From Epiperipatus broadwayi (lineage: Eukaryota > Animalia > Onychophora): a DNA stretch of 64,000 nt. The notes under the pieces were generated by a model that ran no database searches, was not told the DNA's origin, and worked only from the letters and a program-made list of their open reading frames with translations. Within the stretch, counting starts at the first letter, position 1. Each line of letters opens with the position of its first letter. Below, piece after piece: positions 5,429 to 60,329 of the stretch. Position numbers and translations under genes: made by a program. The stretch lies in the NCBI GenBank assembly GCA_028023455.1, contig JAQFVV010000007.1, positions 2,852,001 through 2,916,000 on the forward strand, in the 5' to 3' direction.

Positions 5429-8428
5429 TCAAACATTATCAATCCACTGCAGGATGAAGGTCTCTCCAAGTTTAATCCATCTTCTCCGATCTTTAGCTTC
5501 TCGTCTCCACATCACCCCTACACATTTTCTTATTTCATCCATCCATCTTACATGTGGTCTCCTTCTGGGTCTTTTACAATCTCTTGGAATCCAGTTTAAA
5601 ATTTCAATTATCCATCTATTATCATCTCTTCTAGCAATATGTCCAGCCCAACTCCACTTCAATCTTTTAATTTTTTCAATGAGGTCAGTAACACCTGTTT
5701 GTTCTCTTACCCATACATTGCGTTTTCGATCTCTTCTTGTTACTCCCAACATACATCTCTCCATACTTCTTTGAGTGGTCTGAAGTCTCTGTATTGATCT
5801 TCTATTAAGTGTCCAAGTCTCAGATCCATAAGTAAGAACTGGTAAAACACATTTGTTGAAAACCATTCTTTTCAAACACATAGGCATATTTCCTTTTAGT
5901 ATCAAGTTATTTCTACCAAAAGCACTCCAACCAAGTTTAATTCTATGATTAATTTCCTCCATTATGTTTCCATCTGTATTAATAATCTGACCTAGGTATT
6001 TGTAACTCTTAACTTCTTCTAATTCATCATAATCAATCTTTATTTTCATATTTTGAGCAAATCGATTAAACATTACTTTAGTGTTTTTAACATTTATCTT
6101 TAGTCCTACTTTCCTACTTTCATCTGATAACTCCTGCAACATTTCCTGCAGCTCGGAAGCATTATTTGCAAAAACAACTACATCATCTGCGAAATCTAAA
6201 TGACTTAAATAATCTCCATTTACTTTCACTCCTTTAGTTTCCCATTTTAATCCACAAAATACTTCTTGCAGCACTGCTGTAAAAAGTTTTGGAGATATGG
6301 AGTCACCTTGTCTTACACCTTTCTCAATGTTGACTTTCCCAGTATCATTATGTAATCTAATTGTTGCTGTTGCATTTTTATAAATATTCTTTAAAATATG
6401 ACAATATCCTGGATCTATACCTTGATGATCCAATGCTTTAATCACTGAAGAAATGTTTATAGAATCAAATGCCTTTTCATAATCTACAAATCCAAAACAT
6501 AATGACAACTCATATTCATTTGTCCTTTCTATAACTTCTCTCAATACTTGAATATGATCTACTGTACTAAAACCACTTTTAAATCCAGCTTGTTCTCTTG
6601 GTTGGTGAAAATCCAAGGTTCTCTGTAGACGAGTTGTAATTATCTTGGTAAAAATTTTATATAAAACTGATAAAAGGCTGATAGATCTGTAATTTCTAAT
6701 ATCTTCTTTATCACCTTTTTTAAATATTAATATTATTACTGCATTCTTCCAATCATCCGGTACATCTTTATCATTTAGACATTTGGTATATAACTTTGCT
6801 AATATTTTTTCTGTTTCTTTACCTGCTTCTTTTAATATATCAATTATAATTCCATCATTACCTGGAGCCTTTCCTTTTTTCATACATTTAATTGCATTTC
6901 TCACTTCTTCATTTAAAATTCTGGGCAATTCGGAAGATGTAATAGATATAGGAGGTACTTGTTCTTTATTACTATATAATTCTTGATAAAAATCTTCTAC
7001 CAATTTCATAATGTCATCCCTCTTTTTAGTAATAATTCCATCTTTTTTCCTTATTGCAGATATAAATTTCCTACCAATACCAAAATGTTGTTTTACATTC
7101 TTAAGACTTTTATTTTCTTCTACAGCTTTTCTTGCTAGTTCACAGTTATACTTTCTTATATCATTTTCAACTCTTTTCCGCACCATTTTACAAAATTCGA
7201 GATATTCAATTCTTTTTAATGCATCATTCTTGCATATCTTCATATTCCTTCTTTTCTTCATAAGTTCTCTAGTCTCAGTAGAAATTTTATTAGTCAATTG
7301 CTGCTTTTTTCTACTAGCTATCTTTGTTGCAGTTTTTAAAAGTGTATCAGTTATTTTCATATTAATTTCATTCAAATCTGAATCATGTTCAAAATCTACT
7401 AATACTTGAAACCGATTTGTAAGTTCTAATTTAAATTCATTAGAATGTTTCTGAAGATTAGGAATATCAACTGTAAATATAGTTTTTCTTAATAATTTTT
7501 GTCTCTCTAGTTTTACATTAACATGTATCTTACCCCTTACTAATCGATGATCACTTCCTGTGTTAAATTTATTAAGAACATTACAATCTTGAAATATGTA
7601 TTTCCTGTTAGTCAAAATATAATCCAATTCTGCTGTACCTTCATTTGGATGCTTCCATGTCCATTTCCTTCTAACATTTTTCTCAAAAAAAGAATTCATA
7701 ATATAAAGTTTTTCCTTCTCTGCAAACTCCACAAGTTTATGTCCTCTCTCATTTCTATTACCATAACCAAAATTACCTACAACACTTTCATCTTTCATTT
7801 GTTTACCAATTCTAGCATTAAAATCTCCCATAACAATTTTAAAATGTTGTTTACTCTGATCAAAAGCCTTTTGTACATCCATATAAAAATCTTCTACTAC
7901 TTCATCACTGTGAGAACTTGTTGGGGCATAAACCTGAATTATCTGCATTTGATATCTGCTATTAAGTTGTATAACTAATCTTGCCACTCTGTCTAATACA
8001 CCATCAATCTCCAGAATATTGTTCTTCCACTTTTTATTTATAATGAATCCTACTCCACTTGTATTTCCAATATTTGTGCCTTTATAATAGAGCATATGTC
8101 CACTTTTTAAATCAATTGTCTCTTCACCTTTTCTTCTAACTTCACAAAGTCCAATAATATCCCATTTAATATAAGAGAGTTCTTCTTCTAATTCTTGCAA
8201 TCTTCCTTCACTTGAAAGTGATCTGCAGTTGTAAGTACCTAAATAAAAAGTCGTCATCAAATGGCAGCCTGGGTCCGCCTCCAGGATATTCTTAGCACCC
8301 TCCGCCTTCGGCCACCAACCGCTGCCTTGGTTGGTGACTTTACAGCTTCCTGGGATTAAAGGCCATGCTTTATTTTTGTCTGTCATAATTGTATAATTGG
8401 GAAAAATCTTTATCATTTGCACAAACAT
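5429..8428 (-). CDS. RTE ORF: apurinic-like endonuclease plus reverse transcriptase, 999 aa, uninterrupted
   Basis: APE motifs GTYNCRSL, DIIGLCEVRR, IQVYAPT, MGDFNARIG, LDYIL, SDHR. RT motifs KAPGNDG, QAGF, FVDYEKAFD, GVRQGDSISPKLF, FADD. RTE-type C-terminus VLTYGSETWTL and WSWAGHIARR. Confidence 0.95.
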   Translation of the reverse strand: MFVQMIKIFPNYTIMTDKNKAWPLIPGSCKVTNQGSGWWPKAEGAKNILEADPGCHLMTTFYLGTYNCRSLSSEGRLQELEEELSYIKWDIIGLCEVRRKGEETIDLKSGHMLYYKGTNIGNTSGVGFIINKKWKNNILEIDGVLDRVARLVIQLNSRYQMQIIQVYAPTSSHSDEVVEDFYMDVQKAFDQSKQHFKIVMGDFNARIGKQMKDESVVGNFGYGNRNERGHKLVEFAEKEKLYIMNSFFEKNVRRKWTWKHPNEGTAELDYILTNRKYIFQDCNVLNKFNTGSDHRLVRGKIHVNVKLERQKLLRKTIFTVDIPNLQKHSNEFKLELTNRFQVLVDFEHDSDLNEINMKITDTLLKTATKIASRKKQQLTNKISTETRELMKKRRNMKICKNDALKRIEYLEFCKMVRKRVENDIRKYNCELARKAVEENKSLKNVKQHFGIGRKFISAIRKKDGIITKKRDDIMKLVEDFYQELYSNKEQVPPISITSSELPRILNEEVRNAIKCMKKGKAPGNDGIIIDILKEAGKETEKILAKLYTKCLNDKDVPDDWKNAVIILIFKKGDKEDIRNYRSISLLSVLYKIFTKIITTRLQRTLDFHQPREQAGFKSGFSTVDHIQVLREVIERTNEYELSLCFGFVDYEKAFDSINISSVIKALDHQGIDPGYCHILKNIYKNATATIRLHNDTGKVNIEKGVRQGDSISPKLFTAVLQEVFCGLKWETKGVKVNGDYLSHLDFADDVVVFANNASELQEMLQELSDESRKVGLKINVKNTKVMFNRFAQNMKIKIDYDELEEVKSYKYLGQIINTDGNIMEEINHRIKLGWSAFGRNNLILKGNMPMCLKRMVFNKCVLPVLTYGSETWTLNRRSIQRLQTTQRSMERCMLGVTRRDRKRNVWVREQTGVTDLIEKIKRLKWSWAGHIARRDDNRWIIEILNWIPRDCKRPRRRPHVRWMDEIRKCVGVMWRREAKDRRRWIKLGETFILQWIDNV

Positions 8429-12100: not shown

Positions 12101-12318
12101 AGTAAATTATTTTTTAATTTTTGTTTTCTGTGATTTATTTTATAAATCAATGGAATATATATATATCATTTGAATGCATTATATATTTAAATGTGCTAAT
12201 TAATCCAACTGGATATTAAGCAATCTCGCACACCCACACACACACACACACACACACAACCTAAGTGCTATATGTTTGTTGACATAAAGGCAGAGATTGA
12301 ACAACTTAGAAAAGAATT

Positions 12319-13363
12319 AAAACAGGCAAAACTCTCCATACCATAGTGCCACTCAGTGCAAGCTAGAGTAATTAATGGATGCTAGAAGGCTTGTGCATAA
12401 AATCCCCATGTAGTGCCTATTCATCCAATATTCCCAGACTAGTTTCTAGCTTGTGACTTTCATCAGTGAGGAACTTTGCATCCAAGAACACTGCACCTAG
12501 GTCTTAGGATCTAGTGCAACCCCCCAGAAGTCACCTTTTATCTCTACTTAACTACAAAACCATGAGTCTAAAATTTGAAAACATGATAATATTTTCAATC
12601 CAAGCTCATTAGCTTATATAGTCATTTAGGACTGAACTCTATTTCAGTACCCATACATTTCTGTGTCTTTGGTTCTTTAATAACCATAGCCATCACTATC
12701 CTATTAGGCAGGATTGCTATTACACCACTAAGCATCACATGATCATCATTTCTTATGCTTGCTCATAACTGTTATTAAAACAGGTAAAACTCTCAAACTC
12801 TTTATACAGAAGCTAGTCTGGAATATTCGATGAGTAGATACTAGATAGGGATTTTATGCACAAGGCTTCTGGCATCTATTGATTACTCTGGTTTGCACTG
12901 AGTGGCACTACTGTATGGAGAGTTTTGCCTGTTTTAATAACAGTTATAAGCAAGCATAAGAAATGGTGATCATGTGAGTTTAATGGTTTAATATCAATCT
13001 TGTCTAATGGGATAGTGGTGACTATAGTTATTAAAGAACCAAAGACACCAAAATGTATGGGTATTGAACTAAGTTCAGACCTATATGACTATATAAGCTA
13101 ATAAACTTGGATTAAAAATATTGTGTTTTCAATTTTAAACTCATAATTTTGTAGTTAAGTAGAGATAAAAGGTGGCTGCTGGAGGGTTGCATTAAATCAT
13201 AAGATCTAGGTGCAGTGCTAGGCCCTAAATAGGGATTTTTGACAAGCCTTCTGTCATCCATTGATTACTCTGACTTGCACTGGGTGGCACTACTGTATGG
13301 AGAGTTTTGCCTGTTTTAATAACAGTTATGAGCAAGCATAAGAAATGGCAATCATGTGATGTC
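12319..13363. mobile_element. Inverted, TSD-flanked insertion of an apparently non-coding ~460-bp hammerhead-bearing repeat (PLE-type/retrozyme-like)
   Basis: Left arm 12319-12794 (458-bp period, AACAGG.AAAACTCTC at 12321 and 12779). Right arm 12809-13363 is the reverse complement plus a ~45-nt tail. 11-bp TSD AGAAAAGAATT at 12308-12318 and 13364-13374. Confidence 0.85.
12431..12473 (-). ncRNA. Minimal type I hammerhead ribozyme with palindromic stem III
   Basis: Minus strand UUCCUCA-CUGAUGA-AAGUCACAAGCUA-GAAA-CUAG-UC|UGGGAA: canonical core, GUC triplet, stem III ACUAGU self-complementary. Stem II base is an A-A mismatch. Confidence 0.75.
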
Positions 13364-13725
13364 AGAAAAGAATTGTTAATGAAAAATTCTGGACATTTGG
13401 AAAGTTATGGGAAGAGACCAAACAAATGGTAGAATATAAACTGAGTTGAAAAAGATATTCCAGCATTACATTAGCATAGCTGTAAAAGATTAGTAAATAT
13501 TATTATTAGGGGATTATCATTAATTAATGAAAAATAAAGATTAATCTTAAGGTTTATTAGAATGAGCCATTGGGAATGTATTGAGTAATTCTGGGACCCC
13601 AAATTCTAGAGCTGAAAAGAATATAAAAAGCTATAATTCTGGTATTGCAATTTCTAAAAAATCTGTCAAATTGAATTACTATACTGTATTACCAAAATGA
13701 AGTAAAAACTCATGTCTTTTTAAAT

Positions 13726-16517: not shown

Positions 16518-18017
16518 AGGTAATTTTGGTTATGGTAATAGAAGTTAGAGAAAACATAGACTTGTGGAGTTTGCAGAAAAAGAAAAACTTTATATTATGA
16601 ATTCTTTTTTTGAGAAAAATGTTAAAAGAAAATGGACATGGAAGTATCCAAATAAAGGTACAGCAGAATTGCATTATATTTTGACTAACAGAAAATAGAT
16701 ATTTCAAGATTGTAATGTTCTTAATAAATTTAACACAGGAAGTGATCATCGATTAGTAAGATGTAAGATATGTGTTAATGCAAAACTAAAGAGACAAAAA
16801 TTATTAAGAAAACAATATTTACTGTTGATATTTCTAATCTTCAGAAACATTCTAATGAATTTAAATTAGAACTTACAAATCGATTTCAAGTATTAGTAGA
16901 TTTTAAACATGATTCAGATTTGAATGAAATTCATATGAAAATAACTGACATACTTTTAAAAACTGCTACAAAGATAGCTGGTAGAAAAAAGCAGCAATTG
17001 ATCAATAAAATTTCTACTGAGACTAGAGAATTTATAAAGAAAAGAAGGAATATGAAGTTATACAAAAATGATGCATTAAAAAGGATTGAATATCTCAAAT
17101 TTTGTAAAATGGTGTGGAAAAGAATTGAAAATGATATAAGAAAGTATAACTGTGAACTAGCAATGAAAGCTGTAGAAGAGAATAAAAGTCTCAAGAGTGT
17201 AAAACAACATTTTGGTATTGGTAGGAAATTTATATCTGCAATAAGAAAAAAAAATGGAATTACTACTAAAAAGAGAGATGACATCATGAAATGGGTAGAA
17301 GACTTTTATTAAGAATTATATAGTAATAAAGAACAAGTACCTCCTATATCTATTACATCTTCTGAATTGCCCAGAATTTTAAATAAAGAATTGAGACATG
17401 CAATTAAATGTATAAAGAAAGGAAAGGCTTCAGGTAATGATGGAATTGTCTAAATGATAAAGATGTACCAGATGATTGGAAAAATGTAGTATTAATATTA
17501 ATATTTAAAAAGGGTGATAAAGAAGTTATTAGAAATTACAGACATATCAGCCTTTTATCAGTTTTATACAAAATTTTTACCAACTCGTCTACAAAGAACA
17601 TTGGATTTCCACCAACCAAGAGAACAAGCTGGATTTAAAAGTGATTTTAGTACAATAGATCATATCCAGGTATTGAGAGAAGTTATAGAAAGGACAAATG
17701 AATATGAGTTGCCATTCTGCTTTGGGTTTGTAGATTATGAAAAGGCATTTGATTGTATAAACATTTCTTCAGTGATTAAAGCATTGGATCATCAAGGTAT
17801 AGATCCAGAATATTGTCATATTTTAAAGAATATTTATAAAAATGCAACAGCAACAATTAGATTTCACAATGATATTGGGAAAGTCAACATTGAGAAGGGT
17901 GTAAGACAGGGTGAATCCATATCTCCAAAACATTTTACAGTATTGCTGCAAGAAGTATTTTATGGATTAAAATGGGAAGCTAAAGGAGTGAAAGTTAATG
18001 GAGATTATTTAAGTCAT
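16518..18017 (+). pseudogene. Internal fragment of the same RTE family as 5412-8708, with stops and a ~65-bp deletion near 17450
   Basis: Colinear with 7778 to 6200 of the intact copy, above 90% identity in windows compared by eye. Ends at DYLSH, just before FADD. Confidence 0.9.
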
Positions 18018-21000
18018 AAAAATATATATTAAAATGGATTTATTTTTTCTTCCACTTATTTATATAAGACATGAGTGTATACGAGTGTAAAGTTAATGTT
18101 TGCAGATCTTAAAAGACCGTGAGCTGAAACTAGTTAATTAAATACACTTTTTATTAATTTGCCAAATGATACGACTACTTTCACACTGAAGATAAATGTA
18201 AAAAAAAACAAAAAAACAATATAGCCAACATATAATTTACTGAGATCAATATTATTCACATAGCAAACGCTGTTTGTTCTTTCAGGAACCAGACGATTGT
18301 GAAATAATCTATATACAATGAATTAATAAGAAAATACAATATATGAATAAATAAATTTTTATTTTTATATACAAAAAAGTTTCAATTATTATTGAATTTA
18401 AATATTCGAATTATTTAAAATAATTATAAATAAATATAAACAGGATATAGAAAAACAGCTGAATTTTCAATAGTAAAAACTTTTATAGTTATTTGAAGTC
18501 ATAAAACACCAATTGCGTCACTTCTGGAATCATAAAAAAACATATTTAATTTATTTATTATGCTAATTTACATATTCAAAACTTTAAAATGGATGTTGTA
18601 AATTTTACGTATTTGTTGAATACAGATAGATAGATGATCGCCTCTATTACGCAAAGCACTTTATAGCTTTTAAAAAAAAAAATCTCAAAAAAGAAAAACT
18701 TTTGTGAACTTTATAATCTCCCCTCTTAATAAACATTTAACATTAGAAATTTTCAAATGCTAGTTTTATATATATATAATATGAAAACATTACAAAATAA
18801 AACATAATTGTTAAATTGTGCTTGTCTTGAATATATTTAAATAATTTATTTTTAAAAAACATTTTTGTGTATTCTCTTCTCTCTATAGATACATGCACAA
18901 TATAATATTATAATTTTTAAATTCTGTGCTGATACATTTGATCTTTGAAGAATCTCAAAGATAGTTTGTTATTATTTGTCATTTCTTATTACAGTTTATT
19001 AAGGATGTAAGTAACTTGTTACATATTACCTAAAATACATCTAGATATAATATGAACTCATCAGCAGTTAATTTCAAATATTATAAAAATATCAACGATT
19101 CACTTAATTCACCTTTATTTATTAATTAAAAACAGAAATTACAACCGGGAAGATCACAAAAGTAATAATAAAAATATATACTGAATAACATTTCATCCAT
19201 CATAAGACTATGGATTTGTGATCATGTCTTTTCTCTAAGGACTGTGTTCTATGCTTGGAGTAGATGATACTTTTTCCATCAATAGTAAAGGCTATGTCAT
19301 ACTGTACTCATACGACTATCCATATTAACTCGTGGCTTTTATTCACCAGCAGTTTTTGATATCTTTTTTCAAACAAATATTTGCTGACATTGGATTAACT
19401 AAGGGCCGATTACTTGAAAAAAAAAAAAATTCTAAACCTGAAAATGTCTCAAGAAATATTTAAGTTTTAGTCAACTAATCATGAATTTAGGCTAGGGCTT
19501 GTCAAATAAATAAGCTAACCACTTTGCTATGCCCCTTCTCTCTTCTAATTTCTTCGAAATATGCAAATGGCGATTATAATGGTACTGGTAATTTGATTAT
19601 AATTTATATTGTGAATCTCATAAACTTGAACAGTAGTGAAATAAAAAAAATTATTTTTCCCTTTTGGGTTTACCTTTAAGAGAATGCAATTCATGAGCTA
19701 AGTTTTCTATTAATTTTTACCTCATGAAAGTAATAAAAAAGTATTTTTTTTATTAATTGAAGAGAATTATTGTGTTTTGTCTGATTTGGGTGCTTAAACA
19801 TCAAAGCTCTATCACAGCAACTGATCCAGGGTTATAAAGAAATGAAAAATAATTTATATTTATAAATAATATTCACTTTATTAATCAAAAAAAGCCAAAG
19901 AAGAGTGGCAATTTGAAGTATTTATGCTACTAATACTTAAATGTTCTTCGGTTTTCACTACTTTTATGCCATCTATTAAATTTAGTAATCATCAGATGCC
20001 AGATCATATTTTTCAATAAATTCTTATTGAGTAATGTCTTATCTAAAAAAAATCCAGATTCATTTCTAGATTATAGCTTTTAGTATTGAGAAGCTTTTTG
20101 GATTTTTTTATTTATTAGTGTCTTAGAACCTTTTTGGATCTAAAGCATTTTTCCTCTAGCAGCAATTTTTTTACTTTTTGTTATACTGCCAAGCTAACAA
20201 TCCAAATTTTAAAAAACTTGTTAAATCCAAGCTTACTTGCTTGTATGATTATATAGATCAGAAAATAGTTTAATTTTTGAATATTATGGTGACCTTAATT
20301 TTTTTATAATTTTCAGCATCTTTATTCTTTGGCCAGAATTGGTACAAAATCATTACAGCACCACATGATTGAACTTACACAGTGCTCTCATTAGTAACTA
20401 GATGGCATAAAAGTAGTGAGCTAATGAATAGCAATGTATAAACTAAGATCATGTAATATCTTAAAGGTTTAATACTTAAACATGGTTTACCATTTTCATG
20501 TTGGAATTGAAGAAAGAATAGTTATTATAGAAAAAGATAAGAAATTTAAAGAGGAAGTTCAGCAGAACTATAGTAATCTTAAAATATTTGATTTGTCTCA
20601 ACTTAAAATAAAACAACTTTAAATAGATTCCAGAATTTTGTTACAGAGGTACAATGAATGAGAAGACATCAGACTGGTATAACAACAGTTATAGAGGATA
20701 TATTCTTTAGCTAACAATTATTATTATTATTTAGTAGGTATTTTTAAAACTTTCACTCCACCATACATTTTAGAAATATATGAATAAAATCACTGAAAAA
20801 GATAAATGACTCATAATATGCATTTCATGCTGAACCAGCATTCTTTAGTTGGCCTAGATGACATGATTACTGATAGTCACTAATGTTTTTATATGAAGTG
20901 GATGGTACCAAAGTTGTAAATCAAATTCTGATAATAGTTAGATGTTAATTTTTAAGCCTATAAAATAATGCTTAGCTGTATCAAGTGTCACTCCATTGGA

Positions 21001-42325: not shown

Positions 42326-44900
42326 GAAGATTTTTTGATTGGCTATGATAATGTTATTATTACCGATGATTTAAAGATTCCAGTTTTATATCAGGGTAGA
42401 ATTACTATACACTTTTTTTTTTATCTTCTAAAGCTTCTAGAATGTTACAGTTTTGTAAATTTTTAGGACTTAAGCAATATAACCCATTTTTTAATGTTTC
42501 TTGTCATACTTTGGATTATATTTTATGTAATTCAACAGTAGTTAGTAATTTTCAATTTGTCTCTGTTAATTTTCCTATTGATGCTCATCATCCACCTATT
42601 GATTTTTATATTAACATTTGTCACTCAAAGGTCAATTGTTCTAATATTTCAAGAAAGGATTATGGAAAAAGTAATTATGTTGAGTTTTGTGAAAACTTTT
42701 CTAAGATTAATTGAAATTTTTTATATTCTTATAATGATGTAAATCATTGCTTAGATGAATTTTTAAAGATTCTTAATAGTTTTATTGATTTGTATATTTC
42801 CAATAAATTGCCTTTCCATAAGGGCTTTCCTCCTTAGTTTATATACAATTTTATTAAGATTATTAAAAGAAATCTTATCATCATAGACTCTATTTTAAAA
42901 CACAGAATATCTTTTTTTGTAATAATTTTATTAATTTCAGAAGATTGGCTAAGCATATTTATAAAAGAGATTTCAAAATTGCATTAGAAAAATTGAGGTT
43001 AATATTTCTTCTAACCCTAAAGAATTTTGAGATTTTATTAATAAGTCTGGTTTGGATAAGAAAAGGGTTCAAGCTACTCATGGTTTTACTTTAAGTGCAA
43101 ATGACTTTTCCAAACACTTTGCTAATGTATATTCATCACATGATACAATATTTTCAAAAACCACATTATTTTGTAATTCTCCTATTGTTCACTGCATGAT
43201 TGATCATATTTCTAAGGATGATGTTCTTATGACTATTAAGCAACTTAAAATTCATTCTAGTTTAGGAAATGATAATATTCCTTCATTTATTTACAAAGGT
43301 CTAGCTGAATTTATTGTAGACCCTCTTGCATTTATTTTTAATTTATCACTGAATTCTTGTGTTTTTCCTAATGTTCTTAAGTGTGCCAAAATGGTCCCAA
43401 TTTTTATGAATGGCTCATATGATTGTGTTAATAACTATAGACCTATATCTGTTTTACATACTATTGCTAGGAATTTTGAAATGTGTGTTTATAATAAAAC
43501 AATTTTAGATGTTAGTAAACTCATTTCCTCTTCACAGCATGGTTTTATTCCTAATAGATGTGTAGAAACCAATTTTTTACTAATTTATGATCATATAGCA
43601 CAAGCAATTGAGAACCAGCAGAGGCTTGATGTTATTTATTTTGATTTATCAAAAGCTTTTGATAAAGTAGATCACAGCATTCTTCTTTACAAATTATATC
43701 AAATGGGTTTTTCTACTAAACTTTATTATTGGTTTCAAATCTTTCTTCATGGTCCTACTGCATATATAAAATTTAATAATAATATTTCATCTAATTTTAA
43801 ATGTAATTTGGGAGTTCATCAGGGTAGTATTTTAGCACCTATGCTTTTTAACATTTATATGAATGACCGTAAGGATTGTTTAAAATCTTCTTATCTTTTG
43901 TGCTATACTAATGATTGTAAAATCTTTAGAAGAATCCATCAGTAATTAATTGCACTCTTCTTCAAAAGGATATAGATAATTTTAGTGCTTGGTGTGATCT
44001 AAATAATATGACTGTTAATTTCAGCGAATGTTCCTTAGTCTCATACTCTAAAAAATCTGAAGTTGTACTTTTTTTTTTTATTTTATTAATTCTCACATAA
44101 TTAATTCTGTTGAATCCCAAAAAAGTTTTGAAAGTTATGTTTTCTAGCAATGGATCCTTTCTTCATCATTTGGAAATGATTATTGGTAAGGCTTTCAGTG
44201 ATGATACAAAATTCAAATTATTTTTGTCATTGGTTCTTCCCATCACGGGATATTGTTCAATCATTTGGAATCCTAGCTTTAAACAGGGATGTAATTTATT
44301 ACAATCAGTGTCTAATAAGTTTTTCAAATATGTTTCGCTTGTAAATAATATAGAGATCTTAAATATCTTTATAAAATTGTTAATAAAATAGTTCTTCTAT
44401 CAGACACAATTTCTACTATTATAATTAGATCTCATGTGCATGATACTCGGTCTGCTTCTGTTTGTTCCATTAAAGTTTATCATTCCAATGTTCTTAAATT
44501 TTCTTCTTTATTTAGACTACCATCTTTATATAATCAGATTTGTAGTAATACTAATTACTTCAATTTAGATTATAATCAATTTTGTAATATTATTCAATTT
44601 AAATGCCCTTGTTGATTGGTTTAAATTGATTTTGTTTACATATATATAGAGCCTGCAAAACAAGCTCTTAACATTTGTGAATACGAGCTTTATTAAAATT
44701 AGGTCATGTAACATCTGACTTGATTTTTTTATCATTATATTTGTTAAATTGGTTGTTACTTTTTATTATTATGTTATGTACACTATGTTTATCCCTTTTA
44801 TTTATTTATTTATTTATTGTTGTTTTTAATGTGTTAACTGTAAATGGCTATATGCTGATGTTTGGCATTTAAATGAATGAATGAATGAATGAATGAATGA
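42326..44900 (+). pseudogene. Decayed CR1-type LINE ORF2 (APE C-half plus RT) and 3' UTR
   Basis: TLDYIL..DAHHPP (APE); NYRPIS, QHGF, YFDLSKAFDKVDH, GVHQGSILAPMLF, YTND (decayed YADD); (TGAA)n tail at ~44875-44898. Confidence 0.85.
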
Positions 44901-48489: not shown

Positions 48490-49035
<546 letters not shown>

Positions 49036-57315: not shown

Positions 57316-57372
<57 letters not shown>

Positions 57373-58470: not shown

Positions 58471-59104
58471 GTTATTTCTATCTTTTACTGACTTTGTGTT
58501 AATAAATCAGGTATATTTATGTCTATACATTTGTTGTGTCATTCCCTGGTTCACCACATCCACCCAACTATATCCACACTTAATTAAATAATCTACGTGT
58601 ATATTCAAAACTTATGAAATATATAAAAATGGTATTCTAAGCTGTGTCAAAGTATTAGGTTCTGATGGGAGCTGGTGAGTATCTTAAATTAATTTAGTAA
58701 TTCTATGCATGACTGAATCTGAGTTTGAATCTATAGAGTCCTTGTTTTACCCTGACCACCAGGACCGAAAAAAAATGATTGCCATTAGTAGCATCAGAAA
58801 CATTGGTCGGATAGTGGAGGTTTTGGAGCACTGGCAAATAGGTTAAAGCTTAGTACTGTTCTGTGACTACCATATCCTGAAGATGCTGGGTTTGAAGTAC
58901 TTTTGCTAGGTCTCTGAATCTTGTTGGCTGATCACATGATTTTGACTGTTACAATGACTAAGACATCTTCATGGTGCTTGACAAAGCAAGTTTTTAGTGA
59001 ATTATATACATTCTAACTAATCATATCAATAGTTTTTGATGTAGCAAAGAATAACTTGTTTGTTAGTTTATCTTTTGAACTCTACTAATATAAAACAAAG
59101 ATTC

Positions 59105-59108
<4 letters not shown>

Positions 59109-59183
<75 letters not shown>
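59109..59183 (+). repeat. (TA)n microsatellite abutting the palindrome
   Basis: Direct inspection; a second (TA)n lies at 59794-59806. Confidence 0.98.
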
Positions 59184-59188
<5 letters not shown>

Positions 59189-59793
59189 AAACCATAAAAC
59201 AATACAGTACTAGATTAAATTCAAAATTTTACCAAAATCCTTACACAACCATGGTTTCATCTACTACAAATAGACCTTCTCAAGTGAAAATCAACCTAAA
59301 GGAAAACATATATATATACAAACAAACAAACCTTCCCATAATTCATTTCAAACTCCACCTTCCCTTAATATCAAAAGAAGTCTTCATAAGATTGATAGCC
59401 TCAGAATCAAGGAGTTTTATCATCAAAGTCTCCTTTATTCTTCTTTTTAACTCATTCTTTTCATAAAATTTTATGAAAAGAATGAGTTAAAAAGAAGAAT
59501 AAAGGAGACTTTGATGATAAAACTCCTTGATTCTGAGGCTATCAATCTTATGAAGACTTCTTTTGATATTAAGGGAAGGTGGAGTTTGAAATGAATTATG
59601 GGAAGGTTTGTTTGTTTGTATATATATATGTTTTCCTTTAGGTTGATTTTCACTTGAGAAGGTCTATTTGTAGTAGATGAAACCATGGTTGTGTAAGGAT
59701 TTTGGTAAAATTTTGAATTTAATCTAGTACTGTATTGTTTTATGGTTTTGCATTTTTATTTTTTGCTAGTATAGTGTTAGACAGTTTTGGTTT
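59184..59793. mobile_element. PLE 3' end present as a 570-bp perfect palindrome (2 x 285 bp, no spacer) plus a 40-nt tail
   Basis: Centre CATAAAA|TTTTATG at 59468/59469; arms 59184-59468 and 59469-59753. The outward reading gives EKNELKRRIKETLMIK..INL..W* (GIY-YIG C-terminal helix). Confidence 0.85.
59647..59697 (+). ncRNA. Variant type I hammerhead (U3-A8 core, palindromic stem III); mirror copy on the minus strand at 59240-59290
   Basis: UUUUCAC-UUGAGAAG-GUCUA(UUUGUAG)UAGAU-GAAA-CCAUGG-UU|GUGUAAG; stem III ACCAUGGU is self-complementary; GUU triplet. Confidence 0.65.
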
Positions 59794-60059
59794 TATATAT
59801 ATATATGGATTTAATTCTTAAGCACTCTTTGGCTTCAAGTTTTGATGAAATGGTATAATAAACATAAAGTAATTAAATGCACTGAACAAGCTTTTGTCAA
59901 AACCCTGCCAGAATTATAGTGCTGAGTAAAGTTATGCAGTATAGATGTGCTTAAATAATTGACATGATGTAATTTGTAAATGAGCACAATATATAAACAA
60001 GGCAATTAAATATTCCACTTTTCAGACAATGAAACACATAAACCATTTTTGATTAAATG

Positions 60060-60117
60060 TGAATCCTTTGCAATTGCCCTCTCTGTATTGAATCCTTTGC
60101 AATTGCCCTCTCTGTAT
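60060..60117 (+). repeat. Perfect 29-bp tandem duplication
   Basis: TGAATCCTTTGCAATTGCCCTCTCTGTAT occurs twice. Confidence 0.95.
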
Positions 60118-60329
60118 TCTCTTTTCTTATCATCCCTTTTGTTTTGTTTAACCATGGAGGTTAATCAATTTGTGAAATAATTGTTAGACTAACCAATGTC
60201 TAACTGGCTCAATATTATATAATGTTTGTAATACTCCATGCAAGTAATGCATAAACCTAGCCAATAATTCTTGGCAGGGATATTCAAGTTAGTATTCCAG
60301 TGAGCCTAATTGTTAATATGTGAATAGGA

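Follow-up and report, generated by a model that had tools for sequence, protein, structure and literature searches.

A perfect 570-bp palindrome with a one-sided tail in a (TA)n tract of Epiperipatus broadwayi: a probable PLE-type insertion

Introduction

Insertions of Penelope-like elements (PLEs) are highly 5'-truncated, are often accompanied by an adjacent inverted 5'-truncated copy, and have a tail of 30-40 bp at one end only (Craig et al. 2021, PMC8557442). A bias towards (TA)n is found in the Neptune, Naiad, and Hydra clades of PLEs, and non-autonomous derivatives share the 3' end (PMC8557442). The palindromes at inverted PLE junctions, of which head-to-head is the commonest form, have been read as products of self-priming (Arkhipova et al. 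2013, PMC3846280). In work with a purified PLE protein, both strands of the DNA were cleaved and extended (Frangieh et al. 2024, PMC11167929). Reverse transcription by this protein begins at two neighbouring internal sites, and the stretch from one site to the other is the tail (PMC11167929). It has been argued that the retrozymes of animals are non-autonomous and derive from PLEs (Li et al. 2026, preprint 10.64898/2026.07.22.740005). PLE transposition is poorly understood, and the literature calls the origin of the inverted copy and of the tail undefined or only partly explained.

The locus described here lies in contig JAQFVV010000007.1 of the E. broadwayi assembly GCA_028023455.1, within an analysed stretch of 64,000 nucleotides (the window; all positions are counted from its first letter). 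Its architecture is the published PLE insertion signature. The locus is a clean example of a kind that has already been described, and self-priming has already been proposed for that kind.

Architecture of the insertion

The insertion lies in a (TA)n microsatellite. The left part of this target tract (59108-59185) is about 78 bp long and has one interruption, TTGATATATTA; no target-site duplication is readable in the tract. It is followed by a perfect palindrome at 59184-59753, which consists of two arms of 285 nt each, with 0 mismatches and 0 spacer. A repeat finder and base-by-base extension from the centre place the centre at 59468|59469 and the first non-complementary pair outward at 59183/59754. 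The sequence-only reading had described a spacer-less perfect palindrome of 570 bp, and its coordinates proved exact. The outermost AT of either arm is indistinguishable from (TA)n, so the element-derived part comprises about 283 nt per arm. The arms contain 29% G+C (71% A+T). A chance inverted repeat cannot account for perfect arms of this length, and that candidate was rejected.

The left arm (59184-59468, minus strand) is an antisense copy of the 3' part of a repeat family, without the 40 nt at the very end of the element. The right arm (59469-59753, plus strand) is a sense copy that is 5'-truncated at the same element position as the left arm. A 40-nt extension, the tail (59754-59793, plus strand), is present on the right side only and has no mirror at the left. 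The run of the sense arm for 40 nt past the palindrome before (TA)n resumes had also been noticed from the letters, and it is borne out. The right remainder of the tract, (TA)6, restarts at 59794 and continues up to 59806. The whole insert, palindrome and tail together, is 610 bp long.

The centre reads AAAA|TTTT and is self-complementary, as expected for a self-priming turn. As single-stranded RNA, the palindrome is predicted to fold into a single uninterrupted hairpin of about -498 kcal/mol, with z = -58 against shuffles. The long dsRNA-type hairpin that had been anticipated is thus reproduced by RNA folding, as a predicted hairpin of 283 bp. No second copy of the arm and no direct repeat of it (pseudo-LTR, pLTR) was found by blastn within the 64-kb window.

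The surroundings of the locus contain further repeats. A very high-copy repeat lies directly left of the (TA)n tract at 58700-58969, with a summed word depth of 1e4-2e5 in the DNA run X1, and is present in organism B too. No tRNA was detected by ARAGORN in the flanks of the palindrome, this repeat included. Another (TA)n tract of about 50 bp occurs 1.8 kb upstream at 57318-57370. It carries no insertion of the arm family and represents a natural "empty" comparison site.

The repeat family of the arms

The family was characterised from public sequencing-run contigs (k=31) of four runs, placed on 58700-60300; among them, X1 is a DNA run. In two index searches, near-identical 31-mers of the arm and tail were present at a share of 0.97-1.00 in all four DNA runs, which come from one sample of organism A. 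The share was 0.63-0.73 in small RNA-labelled runs of organisms A and B, and the same 31-mers were partly present in runs of about ten further organisms. At 90-100% likeness, 5512 X1 contigs lie on the stretch, comprising 1266 at 99% or more, 1924 at 95-99%, and 2322 at 90-95%. The divergence of most family contigs from the window copy is 1-10%. Over the arms, the summed word depth in X1 amounts to 1.1-5.1e5, compared with 31.9 for the single right-flank contig that matches exactly. The summed depth does not equal copy number, but it points to thousands of copies of the arm family.

In X1, each arm is about twice as deep over its outer ~130 nt as over its inner part, which represents a 5'-truncation gradient, and there is no depth drop at the palindrome centre. 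The copies are therefore 3'-anchored and variably 5'-truncated, like retroelements, and many of them reach 5' of the centre. The depth suggests that the family extends 5' beyond the 325 nt seen at the locus. An origin of the arms in a retroelement 3' end, as given by the sequence-only reading, is supported by these 3'-anchored, variably 5'-truncated copies in the run contigs. The family is transcribed, has a very high copy number, and is common to related species, and the arms correspond to its 3' part.

Contigs from other copies and other species cross 59753/59754 unbroken. Record 20 of X6 spans 59610-59760 with 0 differences, record 25 of X9 (organism C) spans 59643-59805 with one difference and one gap, and records 13 and 14 of X5 likewise run across the arm/tail boundary. 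The copies diverge from the window sequence at 59789-59806, and 22 X1 contigs go on into longer (TA)n. Since the copies are unbroken across 59753/59754 and end beside (TA)n, the sense arm with its tail is the normal 3' end of the family. The tail represents the family's own last 40 nt and is continuous with the arm in other copies, in contigs of RNA runs, and in other species. The anomaly at this locus is the inverted arm without its last 40 nt, and not the presence of a tail.

The two alternative ends look alike. The arm end reads ...TATGGTTTTGC|AT and the tail end reads ...TTTGGTTTT|AT. Both ends (59736-59753 and 59779-59795) share GGTTTT followed by AT, a likeness that recalls the two adjacent reverse-transcription start sites of PLEs.

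A common template for both arms

At 59730 (mirrored at 59207) the window copy has C, while 99% of the X1 family depth has T (111,621/112,992). The arms are perfectly complementary, so both carry the minority variant C at this position. Both arms are also truncated at the same nucleotide. The shared ~1% variant and the 100% identity of the arms mean that they derive from one template. Two independent insertions were considered as a source of the arms and are excluded by the shared minority variant, the 1-10% divergence of most contigs, and the shared truncation nucleotide.

The C form at 59730 makes up about 38% of the depth in X6, an RNA-labelled run of the same species, and about 11% in X5 (organism B). 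It may be the minority lineage of the window copy that is transcribed and active; the runs are from different samples, and a strain effect is possible.

Head-to-head junctions in the family

Joints between arm sequences recur in the run contigs. At least 42 were found, and 15 of these are listed. Their shorter sides measure 20-31 nt, and some have unaligned letters between the two sides. Among the 15 listed joints, 13 lead from left arm to right arm within one strand. A left-to-right-arm joint cannot come from an ordinary copy, and each of these joints is therefore a separate genomic head-to-head junction, antisense then sense. The depth is 37-142 for the listed joints and 26-51 for further joints that were seen only with letters between the sides. 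The truncation points differ among joints.

For each listed left-to-right joint, the left coordinate was mirrored onto the right arm and the two truncation points were compared, with random re-pairing of the same points as the null. The offsets of the 13 joints are 4, 6, 8, 10, 15, 17, 24, 29, 34, 57, 92, 119, and 128 nt. Their median is 24, and 9 of the 13 are at 34 nt or less. A median this small occurred in 2.7% of permutations, and at least nine offsets of 34 nt or less occurred in 0.9%. Truncation that is nearly symmetric is expected for self-templating and is not expected for two independent insertions. A k=31 contig stops within 16 nt of a perfect centre, and perfect palindromes are invisible to the joint test, so the excess of symmetry is conservative. 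The high copy number of the family and its frequent head-to-head junctions make the locus an ordinary one for the E. broadwayi genome.

Coding content and hammerhead-like motif

A single frame is open from the centre and comprises 41 codons (59469-59594, plus strand; mirrored at 59343-59468, minus strand), with a TGA at 59592-59594. By base-count arithmetic, an opening of this kind is expected in about 3% of frames of this composition. The frame may be the end of a parental ORF. It has no Pfam match at E<=10, and no true homologue was found by phmmer among 1.84 billion representative proteins. The sole phmmer match, P0001, was rejected as spurious; it is a protein of 52-aa tandem repeats, and its score is a sum of weak repeats. 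The 41-aa frame also gave nothing in a word-index search, no protein-atlas signal, and no relative in the window by tblastn. With a fragment of this length, these searches would detect near-identical relatives only, and the GIY-YIG C-terminus named by the sequence-only reading is putative. The 285-nt arms contain no reverse transcriptase (RT) coding sequence.

A hammerhead-like motif lies at 59647-59697 (plus strand; mirrored at 59240-59290, minus strand). Its 3' half is that of a canonical minimal type-I hammerhead, GAAAC-CAUG-GUU, with the 8-nt palindrome ACCAUGGU, which resembles the palindromes of the dimer-forming PLE hammerheads. The 5' box, as read from the sequence, is UUGAGAA in place of CUGANGA and thus has U3/A8 for the C3-G8 pair, and a stem II of 5 bp can be drawn. 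The local fold of the motif is no better than that of shuffles. No Rfam hammerhead was matched at E<=10, and at the same threshold Rfam equally misses a canonical minimal hammerhead elsewhere in the window (12431-12473), so the Rfam result speaks neither for nor against the hammerhead of the sequence-only reading, which is putative. At gathering thresholds, Rfam gave no match in the whole window. In E-value mode, the only models matched at the locus are generic long-hairpin microRNA models, which are triggered by the palindrome. The 11-mer GAAACCATGGT is confined to the two arms. An exact-pattern scan of metagenome contigs with a conserved 27-mer of the hammerhead region gave 0 matches.

The canonical hammerhead core mentioned above, CUGAUGA...GAAAC-UAG-UC on the minus strand, belongs to a repeat at 12308-13374. 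This is an unrelated head-to-head repeat with the same general layout, in which the left copy faces about 1.3 inverted tandem units of ~420 nt each and the arms are 86-95% alike. The sequence-only reading had assigned this 12.3-kb inverted unit and the present arms to different families, in agreement with blastn, which finds no similarity between them.

Outside the arms, the window contains RVT_1 ORFs, which are parts of APE-type LINE/RTE elements or unclassified fragments. An intact ORF of 999 aa at 5429-8428 (minus strand) contains an APE endonuclease and a reverse transcriptase and apparently represents a full-length LINE/RTE-type element. A fragment at 17514-18032 has the 11-aa peptide VIKALDHQGID in common with this ORF, and another RT fragment lies at 43052-43945. 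No GIY-YIG domain was found in the ORFs around the RT fragment at 43 kb, and none is detectable in the present copy or elsewhere in the window. Symmetric pseudo-ORFs of 221 aa occur on both strands at 48.5-49.1 kb. They were considered as a second palindrome and rejected, as they belong to a compound microsatellite of trinucleotide repeats, (CTT)n(ATT)n(GTT)n, which covers about 540 bp at 48490-49030.

Origin of the insertion

The insertion is likely to be the product of a single recent retrotransposition, which put a 5'-truncated copy of the family into (TA)n in the head-to-head, 3'-ends-out form of PLEs. The following course is proposed. A nick would be made in the (TA)n tract. The first-strand cDNA, which is the bottom strand of the right arm, would be primed at the distal 3' end (59793) and extended for 325 nt to the present centre. 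The polymerase would then switch from the RNA to the nascent cDNA itself by self-priming (snap-back), and copy-back would give a second arm identical to the first in sequence and in truncation point. The copy-back would halt about 40 nt short of its start and leave a tail on one side only. This halt point would match the inner of the two adjacent PLE reverse-transcription start sites reported in vitro. The free end would finally be attached across the (TA)n break by means of AT microhomology. We infer the enzyme, the order of the steps, and the snap-back, and the snap-back detail is held with less confidence than the single PLE-type event. The structure itself, the abundance of the family, its 3' boundary, the recurring near-symmetric junctions, and the template shared by the arms are direct observations.

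The main rival is priming from both strands followed by a template jump. A dimeric PLE complex would contain two RNAs, and each nicked strand would prime a cDNA from one of them. One cDNA would start at the outer site and include the tail, the other would start at the inner site and be without it, and the two would be joined by the jump with no self-priming. Such a course accounts directly for the 3'-ends-out arms and the one-sided tail, and explains the tail as well as the snap-back does. It requires, however, that two independent cDNAs stop at exactly the same nucleotide to leave zero spacer. The excess of near-symmetric junctions is not predicted by it unless both RNAs share a defined 5' end, and the family depth, which does not drop at the centre, shows that the centre is not a common 5' end of the family. 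Two-strand priming is therefore regarded as unlikely.

A fold-back chimeric long read or a mis-assembly of (TA)n could also have produced the palindrome. Perfect spacer-less palindromes are the classic product of fold-back chimeras, and (TA)n tracts are sites where reads and assemblers do badly. No listed contig bridges the centre, which follows from k=31 contigs ending within 16 nt of a perfect centre and being unable to cross it, and the depth is empty at 58970-59185. All sampled words occur in runs from a sample that is possibly the source of the assembly itself. A fold-back chimera, in contrast, mirrors everything to the end of the read, and the palindrome here is small, internal, and asymmetric, with a one-sided tail and unlike flanks. 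X1 and X4 contain 30/30 sampled 31-mers of 59440-59800, where about 29 of the 331 possible word starts span the centre. Dozens of other head-to-head junctions occur in the family at ordinary depth, and the architecture equals a published biological signature. An artefact of library or assembly is distinctly improbable in view of these features.

An inverted duplication at the DNA level would start from a single 5'-truncated insertion and proceed by template switching in replication or by repair of a hairpin-capped break, or the arms would have been made identical by gene conversion. Hairpins and breaks form readily in (TA)n tracts and in AT-rich palindromes, inverted duplications with short spacers are the product of fold-back inversions, and arm-to-arm conversion can keep arms identical. 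Events of this type should nevertheless not recur at many loci of one family, always head-to-head, and should not stop 40 nt before the end of the element, which is the length of a PLE tail. They would usually take in flanking DNA as well. This origin is considered very improbable.

A DNA transposon of the foldback or MITE type, inserted at TA and bearing long terminal inverted repeats, would fit a palindromic, AT-rich, non-coding, and TA-flanked sequence. In such transposons the terminal inverted repeats and the centre are constant in all copies, the ends are symmetric, and there is a target-site duplication. This origin is hardly credible and was rejected, because other copies are not palindromic units (contigs pass from arm to tail to flanks), the junction position varies by locus, the depth declines in the 3'-to-5' direction, and the tail makes the ends asymmetric.

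The single PLE-type retrotransposition can be extended to a broader and more doubtful proposal. Fold-back of the first cDNA, copied to the inner start site, might be a general step of PLE integration that the zero-spacer palindrome and the excess of near-symmetric junctions record, so that the inverted copy and the tail are products of one reaction, and retrozyme-like repeats might be mobilised by PLE enzymes. If this were true, such scars on a short, apparently non-coding family with a U3/A8 hammerhead would represent direct, integration-level evidence for PLE mobilisation of animal retrozyme-like repeats. A perfectly symmetric and evidently young insertion from a highly active family offers a clean natural product for distinguishing self-priming from two-strand priming, and thousands of further family junctions are on offer for a census. 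The locus is also predicted to be fragile and prone to cruciforms, and it may give rise to long hairpin RNA.

Comparison with known systems

LINE-1 twin priming: The locus resembles the products of LINE-1 twin priming in that an inverted segment would be made during target-primed reverse transcription in a single event. Twin priming, however, inverts an adjacent upstream part of the RNA, and its segments differ, whereas both arms of the present locus are the same segment.

Palindromic AT-rich repeats: The PATRRs of human chromosomes 11, 17, and 22 (PMC1851657) are likewise AT-rich, near-spacerless palindromes of several hundred bp for which cruciform formation and fragility are expected. Their origin differs from that of the locus, which is a retroelement insertion, and the fragility suggested here is by analogy with them (PMC1851657).

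Retrozymes and non-autonomous PLE derivatives: The family has in common with animal non-LTR retrozymes (preprint 10.64898/2026.07.22.740005) and with non-autonomous PLE derivatives, such as the non-autonomous Chlamys elements (PMC8557442), that it is a short, very abundant, and transcribed repeat, apparently without coding capacity, in which a hammerhead-like motif occurs. Its mobilisation is probably in trans, by way of a PLE-like 3' end. The defining features of retrozymes are tandem units, bounded by active hammerheads, and circular RNAs, while the locus is an inverted pair with no tandem.

PLE insertions: The locus shares with PLE insertions the head-to-head, 3'-ends-out copies, the 40-nt one-sided tail, and the (TA)n or AT-rich target. 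PLEs have a hammerhead ribozyme in the terminal repeat, and the hammerhead-like motif of the locus, roughly 60-100 nt from the 3' end, may be a further likeness. In contrast, no ORF for a PLE-clade RT or for a GIY-YIG endonuclease (catalytic residues R, H, E, and N) was detected at the locus, which has no direct pLTR either, and its putative hammerhead core is U3/A8-like instead of C3/G8. It differs further in that both copies are cut at the identical nucleotide and the arms form one perfect palindrome. The earlier attribution to Penelope stands as regards the inverted copy, the one-sided tail, and (TA)n, which match the PLE signature, but finds no RT and no pLTR at the locus to go with them. 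It is the architecture that would link the locus to PLE enzymes. By analogy with the described insertions, the locus is filed as a PLE-type insertion, which would be the truncated 3' end of a PLE or else a passenger that is non-autonomous.
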